Assembly (NCBI GenBank): GCA_002269645.1
Contig: NIVC01000221.1
Span: forward strand, 496,001 to 560,000
Direction of reading: 5' to 3'
DNA length: 64,000 bases
From: Macrostomum lignano
Lineage: Eukaryota
Part shown: piece by piece, positions 2,095-38,590 of the stretch
How positions within the stretch are numbered: the stretch's first letter is position 1
Layout: the number at the start of each line of letters is the position of its first letter
Program-made: the position numbers and the translations under genes
Notes under the pieces: model-generated
What the model saw: the letters and a program-made list of their open reading frames with translations, nothing else
Told to the model about the DNA's origin: nothing
Database searches by the model: none

Positions 2095-2384
2095 GGATAC
2101 AACTAACAGTTCTCTACAAGCATAACGAACCGAATAGAAGTCCAAAGTATCGGAACCGCCCGTAGGTGCAGATCTGACTGCACAAAATTTCACAGTGAGC
2201 GAATTGCTTTCAACAAAACTACCGATAGCAGCAAGTGTTCCAGTGATACGGGTTTCTAACGTCCTCCTAAAGCAACCCACGTAGCGAATGCCCTGCGGTT
2301 GGGTGGTACGGAAGCGGTGCACAGCCTAGCAAGGGCTGCCCAAAACAGCAGGAGATCAATTGCTAGTATTTTTAATCTCTGCAT
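2095..2384 (-). pseudogene. Frameshifted WSC exon 1 (pairs with 500-640)
   Basis: ATG at 2384 gives MQRLKILAIDLLLFWAALARLCTASVPP, shifts to QGIRYVGCF, shifts again to SQICTYGRFRYFG; matches the intact paralogs. Confidence 0.8.
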
Positions 2385-3404
2385 TGCCTAAGATGTTTAC
2401 AGGTGGCAACTGAAAACGTCGATTTTATCTGGAGTTTCTTCCCGATGAGACAAGCAAAGCCGTCACCATGGAAATCGAACGCGAGCAAATGTTTAATTCT
2501 ACGAGTAGCACACACGTCTGAGCAGCTGTCTGCTTTCCGACAGAGAGCGGCAACTCCCGCTTCCTTGCAGTGGATGGTAAATCTGTCCACGAGTTTGCTT
2601 TTTCACCTTCATCTATTTACTCAGACATTTGAATTTCTTGCTAATTAATGCAACGGATACATGCATATTCACAAGTCCTGTCAATGTTTACTGAACCCTC
2701 CTCCCTTTCTGCCGCTCTGGTGGACAGGAGTCGATTTGTGAGAACAATAGAATGAATGCATACGTAAGAAGATCCATTCGATTTCTGCCGACTTGCGGAA
2801 TCGCACTCTTTAATTCTTCATCGAATCGAATGCCGGCCAGCTGAGGAACCAGCCAGCTCTGTCTTGGCTGATTCACAGGCATCAGTGCAGAAGCATTTAG
2901 GATCAGTTTCTAACGGCTGAATGCAGGGAAACGTTTCCAGCTTCCTTGATGAAAAAAGCCGACCGTATGGTTGTTATCGCAGACCTGCCTCTGCAACTTT
3001 GGTTACACTGCTGGCATTTTCCATGGAGTTTCTCACGAATAATCAAAATGCAAAAGAAGCAACATTAAAATCGTGATACTTCACGGTTTTTTAGGTTGAA
3101 ATCCTTTTATAAAGCCGTGCGCTCGACTTAGGTGTCACTTCGAAAGTTTTTTATTTTGCGTATTATTTTGGTTCTATTCCTAACCTAACAACCTATTAAC
3201 CCAACGACATTAACGTTTAACTTTTTATCCTAAATTAAAAAGCCCTAAATTGCTTAATAGCCCCATATTAAATTACATAATGCACCTACAAGAGTCTTGC
3301 AGTAGCAGAAAAAGTACTGATAAAAATATATTGAAGTCTAAAAGGGCTTCCGTTTGACTGAATAGAGTTGTAGGACAGTGACAGTTCTTCAGACCCTCGC
3401 AGCC

Positions 3405-4373
3405 TCACAGCTTCATCCAGACCCACTCAGCCTCGCTGGACACCTCAGCGGGCACAGCAGTGAATCTCAGCAGGTGGCACATGCGGTTCGTAGGCACGAA
3501 GGCGCAGCCCTGACAGTCCGGGCTTCGCTGGCAGGCGGCAGCGCACTCAATGGCGCTGTCGGTAGAGACGCTGCTGTGGGTGATGGAGCTCAGTGAAGCT
3601 GTGATGCTCGGCATGGCAGAAGTTGGGAGCCTGGCCACTGTTAGGCCAGCTACAAAGTTCAATTAAAACAGAATTTAGGAAAAACACAACTAAAACAGGA
3701 AGGTCAGACCCAATCGATAGTGTGTTTTTATAGACATCTCTATATGATTTATTCAATGCGAATTGCTTTACATGACTTTTTCAAAATCTTTGCATTCTCA
3801 ATAGAGTTTCAAAAAGAATATTTTCAGCACAAACTAATCAGTGCTATTCTGATTCGTGCGACCGTTTTTAACGTTATAAAGATATTTTGACGTCCAGTGC
3901 TCTCAATGACAAACAAAACAACATTCGCTTCGGAAAAAGTCCCTCTCACCGTGATTATAAATATTTTCGTAGACGGAGTTCCTCATGTCTCCACCGCAGA
4001 TTTGAGATGAGTTTCCGTTGCATTTATACGAGCAGTCACTCTCCGGGGCTGGACCGAACGAGCCGTAGCTGTTGCCACAGCAGCAGTATCCACCGTACCT
4101 CGCACCGAAGTATCGAAATCTCCCATAAGCGCAGATCTGGCTGCACAGCTGCAGTGTCATTGAAGCACCATGTGCAATTGATGGCCATCCGGAATGTGTC
4201 CAATACGGACCGACTGTAGCGACCCCAACAAGGCCTGTCATGTCGGGGTCCCTTTTATCCACAAAGCAACCGATGTAGCGGAATGCCGTCGGATGAGGCG
4301 GCACCGAAGTCAAGCAGCTTCCGAACGCCGCCCACATCAGCAAGTAGCCGACAGAAAAGCCTTTCCAAAGCAT
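3405..4373 (-). CDS. Secreted WSC + PAN/apple-like protein (gene A); exons 4373-3950 and 3649-3405
   Basis: Signal peptide, WSC motifs YIGCF, LCSQIC, FGARYGGYCCCG, CGG..RNSVY; phase-1 GT at 3949, AG at 3651-3650; exon 2 ECAAACQRSPDCQGCAF...MCHLL. Confidence 0.88.
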
Positions 4374-4628
4374 TTGATTTGATACCTATGGTGGTCTTAT
4401 CAGTTAGTGCTTGGAGTATTGGCGTTTCAGAATATGCCAGCTCTGTGCTATGAACCGATCTCTGGCTACCGGCTTATGTTTTGAGTGCAATTGGGCTCTG
4501 GAGTTTTCTGGACTCGAGAATGGCTGTCTGGTTTCTAGGGGCCTGAGCCAATGAGAAATCAGCTGCATTTCGTAAGCCCATGCTGCGCTCATGGACCACT
4601 AAAATAAAGTTAAGGACTCGCCAATCAC

Positions 4629-4760
4629 GGGCTGTAGCCTAGTGCTTAGAGTGACGAACTCATGACTTGAAGTCGAGGGTTCGATTCTCGACCCACTCGG
4701 AACAATTTGTGCACTTGAGCAAGATACTTAACTCTGCATTGCTTGAGTACACAACTGTAT
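4629..4760 (+). mobile_element. Relic tRNA-headed SINE with CORE-like segment
   Basis: TAGCCTAGTGCTT A box, GGTTCGATTCT B box, then TGTGCACTTGAGCAAGATACTTAACTCT resembling the CORE consensus TGTGACCTTGGGCAAGTCACTTAAC. Confidence 0.55.
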
Positions 4761-35777: not shown

Positions 35778-36013
35778 TACTACTACTACTGCTACTACTA
35801 CTACTACTACTACTACTACTACTGCTACTACTACTACTACTACTACTACTAATGCTACTACTACTACTACTACTACTACTACTACTACTACTACTACTAC
35901 TACTACTACTACTACTACTACTACTACTACTACTACTACTACTACTACTACTACTACTACTACTACTACTACTACTACTACTACTACTACTACTACTACT
36001 ACTACTACTACTA
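35778..36013. repeat. (CTA)n trinucleotide microsatellite
   Basis: About 78 units, nearly pure. Confidence 0.98.
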
Positions 36014-36349
36014 CCGTTGCTGCTGCTCCCGATCCTATAGCTGGCGCGCGCGACACTCAACGTAAATTTCAGAAAAAAAGAATAGCGTCGGGTGCCTGTT
36101 AATTAGCAAAAGCTCTCTCTCTCTCTCAATGCTAATCAACAGCAAGGCCCCCGTGTAGCTTTGGAGATCCGCGTTGTCAGGAAACACACGGAGGGATTCA
36201 AAGGGGTGGGCTAGCACAACCACTTCTAGAAGAAGACTCAGCCAGCTAGTTAGGTAATAATGACAGTAGGCAGAGATGCCCAAAGGATTCTGGGATGCTT
36301 TTGTTTAACAATGTTTAACGAGAGACACTGCACTGCCATTGAAAAGGAT

Positions 36350-37790
36350 CCCTGCACCTTCCCTGCATCTTAGACACTTCTCCTTCCCTGCATCTTAGAC
36401 ACTGCTCCCTTCCCTGCATCTTAGACACTTCTCCTTCCCTGCATCTTAGACATTGCTCCCTTCCCTGCAACTTAGACACTGCTCCCTTCCCTGCATCTTA
36501 GACACTGCTCCCTTCCCTGCAACTTAGACACTGCTCCCTTCCCTGCATCTCAGACACTACTCCCTTCCCTGCATCTTAGACACTTCTCCTTCCCTGTATC
36601 TCCGACACTTCTCCTTCCCTGCATCTCAGACACTGCTCCTTCCCTGCATCTTAGACACTTCTCCTTCCCTGCATCTCAGACACTGCTCCCTTCCCTGCAT
36701 CTCAGACACTGCTCCCTACCTGCATCTCAGACGCTGCTCCCTTCCCTGCATCTCAGACACTGCTCCCTACCTGCATCTCAGTCACTGCTCCCTACCTGCA
36801 TGTCAGTCACTGCTCCATCCCTGCATCTCAGTCACTGCTCCCTCCCTGCATCTCAGTCACTGCTCCCTACCTGCATCTCAGTCACTTCTCCCTCCCTGCA
36901 TCTCAGTCACTGCTCCCTACCTGCATCTCAGACACTGCTCCCAACCTGCATCTTAGACACTGCTCCCTACCTGCATCTAAGACACTGCTCCCTACCTGCA
37001 TCTTAGACACTGCTCCCTACCTGCATCTCAGACACTGCTATCTCAGCCACTGCTCCCTTCCCTGCATCTCAGACACTGCTCCCTACCTGCATCTCAGACA
37101 CTGCTCCCTACCTGCATCTTAGACATTGCTCCCTTCCCTGCATCCTAGACACTGCTCCCTTCCCTGCATCTTAGACACTGCTCCCTACCTGCATCTTAGA
37201 CACTGCTCCCTACCTGCATCTCAGACACTGCTCCCTACCTGCATCTCAGACACTGCTCCCTACCTGCATCTCAGACACTGCTCCCTTCCCTGCATCTCAG
37301 ACACTGCTCCCTTCCTGCATCTCAGACGCTGCTCCCTTCCCTGCATCTCAGACACTGCTCCCTACCTGCATCTCAGACACTGCTCCCTACCTGCATCTCA
37401 GACACTGCTCCCTTCCCTGCATCTCAGACACTGCTCCCTACCTGCATCTCAGACACTGCTCCCTAGCATCTCAGACACTGCTCCCTTCCTGCATCTCAGA
37501 CACTGCTCCCTACCTGCATCTCAGACACTGCTCCCTTCCTGCATCTCAGACACTGCTCCCTACCTGCATCTCAGACACTGCTCCCTTCCTGCATCTCAGA
37601 CACTGCTCCCTACCTGCATCTCAGACACTGCTCCCTAGCATCTCAGACACTGCTCCCTTCCTGCATCTCAGACACTGCTCCCTACCTGCATCTCAGACAC
37701 TGCTCCCTAGCATCTCAGACACTGCTCCCTAGCATCTCAGACACTGCTCCCTAGCATCTCAGACACTGCTCTTTCCCTGCATCTCCGACA
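36350..37790. repeat. Minisatellite of about 25 bp CCTGCATCTCAGACACTGCTCCCTA (22- to 26-bp variants)
   Basis: About 1.4 kb of tandem units with blocks of variant types. Confidence 0.97.
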
Positions 37791-38061
37791 CTGCTACTCC
37801 ATACCAAAAAGCCATAAGGCTGCTAAGAATTCAGCCAATTCTGAAATCTGAGGCGTATTCAAACAGATATTTGTACCACGCCTGATGCAAAATTGAATAT
37901 TTAGAGCTTGTTTGTTTCTTTGAGACGATATATTCCATTAACATACTAGGGTTGAAGTTACATATCATAGTTAAAAAAATCAGTGACACAACAAGGCAAA
38001 ATAGTTAGGTTGTCAATCTTTAGGTGGAGATTTGCTGATAACAGCCGTTTGTTCCGGGCAC

Positions 38062-38590
38062 TCAGCCGAGCACGAAGAGAGTCCAGTCGGGTCCGGTCAG
38101 GCTGCCTGGCGGGTAGGCGAACGCCAGCAGGTGGCCGGCGAGCAGCCGCTGGAGAAAACAGCGGCCTGGCAGTCGGCTTTGGCGCTGCACTGGGCCAGGC
38201 AGTCCATGACGGATGTGGTAGGAGCCGGCCAGGACGAGGTCTTGCTGGTCACCACAGTGAGGATCAGATTCAGATTATGTTTTAGATAATTTTTTATATT
38301 CGTGACACCTAATTACACGTAGGTGCAAAATTATTCGTTTTCAACTTACTCGGATAGGTCAAAGCGAACACGGAGTTGATGGCGAAACCTCCGCAAGTCT
38401 GCAGCGAGTTTCCAGCGCACTGCTTGTTGAAGTGGCTCTCGCCAAGCTTTCCATGCAATCCGTAGCTTGTGCCGCAGAAGCAGAACTTCGTGCTTTGCAC
38501 TCCAAAGTAGGGGAAGCCGCCCAGAGAGCAGAGGTCGCTGCAGAAGTTGAGCGACATGTTTTCAGGGTTCTTTATTAATCCGATATTCTA
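38062..38590 (-). pseudogene. Diverged, damaged WSC-PAN paralog (gene E)
   Basis: MSLNFCSDLC..FPYFGVQ..FCFCG...CAGNSLQTCGGFAINSVF, phase-1 donor A|GTAAG at 38349; downstream MDCLAQCSAKADCQAAVF then frameshift to HLLAF; one WSC Cys changed to Phe; 5' part not found. Confidence 0.7.

Follow-up and report, generated by a model that had tools for sequence, protein, structure and literature searches.

The 64,000-nucleotide (nt) stretch of DNA analysed here, hereafter the window, covers positions 496,001 to 560,000 of contig NIVC01000221.1 of the flatworm Macrostomum lignano, and it holds a real tandem cluster of a multigene family found so far only in Macrostomum. The cluster consists of six loci that join a WSC domain to a PAN-like domain. 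Four of these are intact genes (A, B, C and D), two are decayed copies (psi1 and psi2), and they are distributed over both strands. Taking all lines of evidence together, the explanation that we favour, with somewhat better than even confidence, is a lineage-restricted WSC-PAN tandem cluster in birth-and-death evolution whose products act as extracellular lectin-like binders.

We located the copies by tblastn of the window with the spliced protein A and then with a wider family set. The matches had E-values of 1e-96 to 1e-9, well past chance, and within the window they were confined to these six loci. The count of six members, four intact and two decayed in both orientations, agrees with what the first-pass annotation of this DNA had proposed. 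Its range of 2095-38590 also described a real cluster, but the left boundary moves outward to about 424, or to 60 if an adjoining satellite is included.

The intact genes have two exons each. Exon 1 encodes a signal-peptide-like N-terminus and the WSC domain, and exon 2 encodes a linker and the PAN domain. Gene A is on the minus strand, with exon 1 at 3950-4373 and exon 2, including the stop codon, at 3405-3649 (identified by tblastn, open reading frame (ORF) and the Pfam PAN_1 model). Gene B is also on the minus strand, with exon 1 at 8618-9041 and exon 2 at 8151-8395. Genes C and D are on the plus strand, the former with exons at 15797-16229 and 16447-16691 and the latter with exons at 32770-33184 and 33286-33530; the first exons of B and D were likewise recovered by tblastn, ORF and Pfam. 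All introns are GT..AG and of phase 1, with lengths of 300, 222, 217 and 101 nt in A, B, C and D, respectively, and the spliced ORFs run uninterrupted for 222, 222, 225 and 219 amino acids (aa). Each of the four proteins has a hydrophobic N-terminus, and reading of the sequences revealed no further hydrophobic stretch. The phase-1 intron that had been placed between the WSC and PAN parts is thus seen in A-D, and the same boundary recurs in all six annotated M. lignano relatives.

The assignment of exon 1 to the WSC domain holds for every intact gene. PF01822 was matched in the full-length proteins with E-values of 1.8e-11 to 5e-14 (3.9e-13 for A and 5e-14 for C) and with scores of 49.9, 45.4, 52.7 and 44.6 bits for A, B, C and D, all above the gathering score of 27.8 bits. 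Protein A carries eight WSC cysteines (C36, C77, C81, C97, C99, C114, C118 and C126) together with QICGG, and in an alignment of 14 family members the WSC cysteines and the C-G-G motif show little or no variation. The AlphaFold2 (AF2) model of full-length A shows a WSC core at residues 30-140 with a predicted local distance difference test (pLDDT) score of about 80-86. Foldseek matched this part to the WSC domain of Kremen1 (5fws, E 3e-5) and to yeast Wsc1 (7pz2, E 5e-4), the WSC fold being defined as a PAN-like core around which a long L5 loop is wrapped. According to the published Wsc1 structure, WSC is itself a variant of the PAN/Apple fold (PMC9024836), and therefore the WSC-PAN protein is a tandem of two related modules. 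The earlier division into a WSC part and a PAN part survives in that both are present, but they are related folds and not two unrelated ones.

The evidence for a PAN module in exon 2 comes from several sources. PF00024 (PAN_1, gathering score 21.4 bits) was exceeded by A, with 29.3 bits for the whole protein and 33.0 bits (E 5e-8) for exon 2 alone, and by B with 26.1 bits. When a profile built from 16 exon-2 sequences was compared with the PDB sequences, all of the top 19 matches were PAN/apple domains (E 0.002-0.6), the best being MIC4 (E 0.002), SML-2 (0.003) and HGF (0.003). An AF2 model of exon 2 alone has a core pLDDT of 76-88 and a strand-helix-strand-strand-strand order. The top 37 or so Foldseek matches of this model are all PAN/apple domains, with query-normalised template modelling scores of about 0.5-0.56, and they include HGF, plasminogen, SML-2, the PAN domain of a Colletotrichum copper oxidase, an Eimeria PAN module and MIC4. 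In the model of full-length A, the linker between the two modules is about 25 residues long (141-164) and is predicted to be disordered.

Four cysteines in the arrangement C-x3-C...C...C are invariant in 16 of 16 aligned exon-2 sequences (C177, C181, C187 and C199 in A), a spacing that we take to be like that of C70/C74/C84/C96 in HGF. Judged from this alignment, they match the two core disulfides of PAN that link helix to sheet, the pairing itself being predicted. No cysteine that could form the third disulfide of the apple type occurs near either end of the exon-2 domain in the alignment, and for this reason we call exon 2 a PAN domain and not a strict apple domain. Cysteines beyond these eight and four are also present: the WSC module has a CCC triplet (C98 of A), and a fifth cysteine of the PAN module (C190 of A) occurs in A, B and D and is missing from C. 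They hint at an inter-domain or inter-molecular disulfide.

The two decayed copies have lost different parts of the gene. In psi1 (minus strand), the 5' half of exon 1 lies at 2120-2365, has no ATG, and contains two frameshifts and a premature stop at the position of the CCCG motif. The 3' part of exon 1 lies at 795-917, reads SCGRTSGSNWKELESNCQSECSENVSQMCG..YEVIYPV and is followed by a phase-1 GTAAGT donor. Both were recognised by tblastn and translation. Since the two sides cover complementary residues of A (27-97 and 99-222), we regard the psi1 pieces as one gene split within exon 1 by an insertion of about 1.2 kb at 918-2119. This insertion carries a dispersed repeat (1397-1538 compared with 55387-55538, 77% identity), and tRNA and Rfam scans of the window, the insertion included, gave no match. 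The exon 2 remnant of psi1 at 424-636 shows 44% identity to residues 154-222 of A by tblastn; its first PAN cysteine codon has become a stop (..VIE*AATC..), about 25 codons are deleted, and the reading frame continues directly into a satellite. The decayed member that the first-pass annotation had placed at 2095-2322 is therefore real but is only the 5' half of psi1, its 3' half (424-917) lying outside the range considered then.

The second copy, psi2, is also on the minus strand. Its exon 1 remnant (38350-38557, found by tblastn and translation) lacks the first 65 or so residues and has a conserved WSC cysteine replaced (SDC to SHF). A phase-1 intron of 41 nt at 38309-38349 separates it from exon 2 at 38062-38308, which was found by tblastn; this exon is frameshifted after ..AAVFS and has the invariant fourth cysteine changed to Gly. 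The C-terminal 28 aa of psi2 are 86% identical to P0087 (P-numbered sequences are M. lignano family members from databases), its closest relative, and psi2 belongs to a different subfamily from A-D. The copy had been described at about 38300-38590 as a decayed exon 1 alone; the decay is confirmed, but the frameshifted exon 2 and the short intron are present as well. The 12 structural cysteines are all kept in A-D, and losses are found in both psi1 and psi2.

We then considered how widely the family occurs. Among about 15 billion proteins, the full-length two-domain relatives were, in the matches checked, all M. lignano entries named "WSC domain-containing protein". When 1.84 billion representatives were searched with a profile, 8515 matches were obtained, mostly multi-WSC proteins of fungi and other organisms. 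In this set the full-length matches in a single stretch were 176-230 aa long, and every one that was looked up was again an M. lignano "WSC domain-containing protein" that scored for both WSC and PAN_1. The representative search and the structure prediction were run without the gene C sequence. The M. lignano relatives score 17.8-23.3 bits for PAN_1 and share 49-64% amino-acid identity with A-D, and when clustered at 50% identity the family members of this species fall into at least some 15 groups, all of them auto-named in the same way. In the annotated members (6/6) a single phase-1 intron sits exactly at the WSC/PAN boundary, which supports the splice models of the window and shows this gene structure to be ancestral within the family. 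The claim that a WSC-PAN architecture of about 210-230 aa is uncharacterised is correct for the literature searched, but such proteins were already present in the databases in the M. lignano sets. Family genes also occur in tandem elsewhere in M. lignano, as pairs with a spacing of about 4 kb (5373-6271 and 10001-10805 of locus L006, and likewise in L007), and the presence of this pair on two contigs probably reflects duplicated subgenomes.

The history of the cluster can be read from the divergence of its members. Genes A and B lie in a duplicated unit of about 1.56 kb (3059-4617 compared with 7695-9286), outside of which identity drops to background. Between them, identity is 91% in the exons, 86% in the 244 bp upstream of the start, 74% in the intron and 71-72% in the downstream flank. 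Pairwise comparison of A/B, C, D and M. lignano P0005, with the A-B pair excluded, gives a synonymous divergence (dS) in exon 1 of 0.9-3.4, mostly saturated. By these distances the tandem duplication that produced A and B is recent, and C and D are paralogues of long standing. Neighbour joining places the pair (A,B) as the sister group of M. lignano P0001-3 (74% support); a clade ending in "WVWMKL" has 69% support, and psi2 falls in the other major clade. Between the members lie ORFs of transposons, namely an intact THAP/P-element-like transposase, DUF4218-type ORFs and a degraded retroelement. With a recent duplicate, old paralogues, two pseudogenes and interleaved transposons, the sequence record fits evolution of the cluster by birth and death, as had been suggested before.

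The ratio of nonsynonymous (dN) to synonymous divergence (omega) in exon 1 is 0.12-0.51 in every pair. These low values, and the higher conservation of the A/B exons than of their intron and flanks, point to purifying selection on the family, and positive selection is not supported by pairwise dN/dS in any pair of A-D and P0005. A candidate signal in exon 2 of A and B (omega about 1.5) was considered and rejected: it rests on few changes, its dN of 0.11-0.15 is lower than the mismatch fraction of 0.26-0.29 in intron and flanks, and the excess changes lie mostly in the predicted disordered linker.

These data also bear on the idea that the genes called intact are non-functional relics, or that exon 2 belongs to no gene and the ORFs arose by chance. 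Although the gene-call collection contains none of the window's ORFs, the completeness of four ORFs and their canonical splice sites, the exon 1 omega just given, exons better conserved than intron and flanks, the retention of all 12 structural cysteines in A-D against their loss in both pseudogenes, and the two-exon structure shared with annotated M. lignano gene models all speak against it, and we consider this idea highly improbable.

A further feature of the family is a 28-bp minisatellite, GAGGCTGAGTGGGTCTGGATGAAGCTGT, whose first unit is made up of the last nine codons (EAEWVWMKL) and the T of the TGA stop. Tandem Repeats Finder detected three arrays of it beside family members. After psi1, about 16 units on the minus strand (60-510, the reverse complement of GAGGCTGAGTGGGTCTGGATGAAGCTGT) are continuous with the remnant of the coding end; 4.7 units overlap the coding end of gene B (8048-8180, minus strand); and about 20 units begin within the last nine codons of gene D (33501-34062, plus strand). 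Genes A and C keep about 1.3-1.5 units. Outside the window, M. lignano P0005 has 17.8 units with phase and consensus identical to the window arrays; in M. lignano the array lies at 10721-11219 of locus L001. Its anchoring phase is shared by B, D, psi1 and P0005. No satellite anchored at the coding end was found in the genes of the other subfamily that were inspected (P0009, P0101, P0128, P0171 and P0163).

The sequence at this end of the gene is unusually uniform among paralogues. For the same pairs as above, again including those with P0005 and excluding A/B, dS is 0.17-0.35 in the last 40 codons as compared with 0.9-3.4 in exon 1. Units resemble each other as closely between arrays, including comparisons of the window with P0005 (0.81-0.88), as they do within arrays (0.84-0.93). 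The unit has stops in all three sense frames, and folding gave no evidence of a structured RNA in the satellite (z = -1.8). Two accounts of the arrays may be offered. First, they may be recurrent local amplifications of a "master" unit at the coding end that selection on the peptide, and possibly on the nucleotides as well, holds constant. Second, arrays and coding ends may exchange sequence by conversion or unequal crossing-over, leading to homogenised 3' ends and to deletions of the psi1 type. A stronger and rather doubtful proposal is that the minisatellite is a working part of the gene family, either as a substrate for recombination and gene conversion or as a repeated regulatory element of the 3' untranslated region. 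As a conversion substrate it would hold the 3' ends of paralogues close to identity, synonymous sites included and in the window and P0005 alike, and it would seed the duplications and deletions that drive birth and death, as in psi1. A minisatellite anchored on a stop codon offers a concrete case for the co-evolution of a tandem repeat and a coding end, the more so as its consensus is identical in the window and in P0005 while the rest of the gene is synonymously saturated.

With regard to function, WSC modules of fungal enzymes and lectins bind glycans, among them beta-1,3-glucan, chitin and xylan (PMC11611005; PMC9024836). The nearest PAN structures to the exon-2 model are galactose-binding lectins and the heparin-binding N-domain of HGF. 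From the glycan binding of WSC in fungi and the lectin- or HGF-like PAN module, we infer that the WSC-PAN proteins are probably lectin-like extracellular binders. By analogy, such a protein would be secreted and would serve in the extracellular space as a bivalent, lectin-like binder or cross-linker. The ligand of its WSC module would be a polysaccharide or glycan, as for the fungal modules, and that of its PAN module a second glycan or a protein, as for the apple lectins of apicomplexans or the N-domain of HGF.

Several points weigh against this combined picture of a Macrostomum-restricted family of lectin-like binders. First, the signal peptides of A-D were judged by eye from the sequence. 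Second, the PAN-like fold proposed for exon 2 in the first-pass annotation is upheld by Pfam in A and B, by the PDB profile and by Foldseek, but C (15.5 bits, or 18.9 for exon 2 alone) and D (17.8 bits) stay below the PAN_1 gathering score, and in the AF2 model of full-length A the pLDDT of the PAN region is only 56-66. Third, the extra cysteines make the disulfide map uncertain. Fourth, the restriction to Macrostomum rests on the best 150 of the 8515 matches and on 20 look-ups, a sample that weaker single WSC-PAN proteins of other phyla would escape. The matches checked for this architecture came only from Macrostomum, but a metagenomic protein of 676 aa has two WSC domains together with PAN_4, so that the pairing of WSC and PAN does exist elsewhere inside larger proteins. 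Fifth, the ligand may not be a glycan, as WSC and PAN also mediate protein contacts (Kremen-Dkk and HGF-MET).

The last point can be carried further, to the view that WSC-PAN proteins are protein-binding extracellular ligands or antagonists, comparable to the WSC domain of Kremen (Dkk/LRP6) or the PAN domain of HGF (MET/heparin). The best structural matches of the WSC and PAN parts are indeed Kremen1 and the HGF N-domain. However, fold similarity does not reveal the ligand, A-D have no Kringle, CUB, transmembrane or protease domain, and a lineage-restricted, fast-evolving family would be unusual for a conserved signalling component; we hold a role of this kind to be improbable.

The setting in which the proteins work has two candidate answers. 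The first-pass annotation had suggested immunity, mucus or adhesion; on this view they would be secreted lectins that bind microbial or algal polysaccharides, in pattern recognition or in the structuring of mucus. The beta-1,3-glucan, chitin and xylan binding of fungal WSC modules and the galactose-binding apicomplexan lectins among the nearest PAN structures were counted in its favour, as were other secreted lectin-like genes in the window, namely a NedA-like F5/8 type C exon (30246-30599) and PAN-like genes (44925-46079 and 58767-59912). This structural evidence nevertheless fits other roles equally well, and no Macrostomum literature was found that links WSC or PAN proteins to immunity or adhesion. 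An immune, mucus or adhesion role is unsupported here, and we would advance it only tentatively.

The second answer, which we rate about as unlikely as the first, is that WSC-PAN proteins are seminal-fluid proteins made in the prostate and transferred at mating, their turnover arising from sexual selection or conflict, an idea already put forward for other M. lignano proteins with WSC domains. The functional literature on WSC in the genus does point to prostate and seminal-fluid expression (PMC5977470; PMC4490696; PMC6953679). Roughly 20-25 of the 76 prostate-limited M. lignano transcripts have a WSC best match (Weber 2018, PMC5977470, Table S1), RNA815_80.4 (Mlig-pro5) has two WSC domains and is prostate-specific (PMC4490696), and knock-down of the WSCD2-like Mlig-pro46 lowered the paternity share of the second male (P2), a marginal effect with an adjusted p of 0.06 (PMC6953679). 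Small secreted proteins, lineage-restricted expansion and birth and death are, moreover, typical traits of seminal-fluid genes. Against these points, we compared about 135 primer pairs of prostate probes and RNA interference (RNAi) experiments (Patlar 2019 supplement; Brand 2020 Table S11) with eight M. lignano family loci, and none matched with up to 2-3 mismatches; the closest relatives, P0001-4, were compared at the peptide level only. Translated primers gave only scattered single-primer matches of six residues against 181 proteins, with no primer pair and with no exact match in a WSC-PAN family member. As read from primers spanning the start codon, several prostate WSC transcripts begin with M(Q/L)FSTLAL, unlike all WSC-PAN N-termini. 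The dN/dS values, which give no sign of positive selection, were also counted against a seminal-fluid role. The gene ID Mlig013640 and five others were absent from those portions of the full texts and of the Brand 2020 supplements that were searched, a result that is not conclusive. We conclude that a seminal-fluid role for the family is plausible but unsupported.

The remainder of the window is eukaryotic sequence with interspersed transposons and satellites. Two paralogous single-exon ORFs at 44925-46079 and 58767-59912 (both minus strand; 384 and 381 aa, 35% identical) start with a signal-peptide-like segment, and their N-terminal part holds a PAN-like module of cysteines (PAN_3, E 1e-3, below threshold); Pfam matches nothing in the remaining 230 or so aa. 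Of the pair, only the 384-aa ORF was searched against a database of 5.8 billion proteins, and it had no homologue there. The exon at 30246-30599 (minus strand) encodes a NedA-like, F5/8 type C galactose-binding domain (PF22633, E 9e-12), and upstream of it on the same strand an ORF at 30889-31356 is cysteine-rich and PAN-like by eye; the two together (30246-31356) are possibly another secreted lectin gene inside the cluster.

Transposon remains are found both between and beyond the family members. Between B and C, an uninterrupted ORF of 975 aa at 10761-13688 (plus strand) encodes a THAP/P-element-like transposase with THAP, TNP-like RNase H and GTP-binding insertion domains. An AT-rich stretch between C and D holds transposase-like ORFs at 18692-20533 (minus strand) with weak DUF4218 and DUF1258 matches. 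On the minus strand at 48768-50133, 51368-54773 and 56948-57502 are a BEL/Pao-type long terminal repeat retrotransposon (RVT_1, Peptidase_A17 and DUF1759 gag) and recombinase-like ORFs, and those ORFs with weak tyrosine-recombinase (Phage_integrase) matches are possibly Crypton- or DIRS-like elements. Other repeats comprise a 22-bp array of 15 copies directly upstream of gene C (15273-15611), a (CTA)n run of 238 bp (35777-36014) and a 25/50-bp satellite of about 1.4 kb adjoining psi2 (36352-37795).

A stand-alone secreted WSC-PAN protein forming a large genus-restricted family has not been characterised before, and its layout of one exon per module with a conserved phase-1 intron provides a clean example of modular gene architecture. 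Should these proteins prove to be lectins of the reproductive, mucous or defensive secretions of flatworms, they would offer an experimentally tractable system, given the RNAi and transgenesis available in M. lignano, in which the rapid turnover of genes could be tied to a defined function in binding.

The closest known counterparts of A-D are the auto-named M. lignano proteins in the databases, such as A0A1I8GV01 and A0A1I8J167, which are WSC-PAN proteins of about 176-238 aa; BOX15_Mlig013640g1, Mlig003631g5, Mlig021789g1, Mlig023418g2, Mlig005479g1 and Mlig027391g1 are of the same type. One clade of these relatives has the same conserved C-terminus, ..RMCRLLRFAAVPAEVASEAEWVWMKL, as the window genes, and the 28-bp minisatellite follows the stop codon in database relatives as it does in the window. 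The Mlig-pro series of the same genus (Mlig-pro5, -pro46 and -pro63) is likewise secreted, WSC-containing, multigene and fast-evolving; where described, however, these proteins have two WSC domains or WSCD2-like matches with no PAN reported, and their signal peptides differ.

More distant systems share one module or the other. The fungal WSC proteins (Serendipita WSC3, Pyricularia PorAlcOx, Trichoderma TrLOx and yeast Wsc1) have the WSC fold, the eight cysteines, the CGG motif and documented glycan binding in common with the window proteins, but they occur as lectins with several WSC domains, as appendages of enzymes or as transmembrane sensors, and in none of them is a single WSC joined to a PAN. 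The copper-radical oxidases carry either PAN_1 or WSC at the N-terminus, as alternatives and not in combination (PMC11611005). On the PAN side, SML-2 of Sarcocystis, MIC4 of Toxoplasma and the N-domain of HGF/plasminogen are the best matches of exon 2 and share its two core disulfides; they differ in that identity is only about 14-26% and in that they are tandem apples or N-terminal domains of proteases and growth factors, and the window PAN domain lacks the third (apple) disulfide. Finally, Kremen1/2 and WSCD1/2 share the WSC domain, Kremen1 being the top structural match of the window WSC; but Kremen is built as Kringle-WSC-CUB-transmembrane and WSCD proteins have a sulfotransferase domain, whereas A-D, at 219-225 aa, hold WSC and PAN only according to Pfam.

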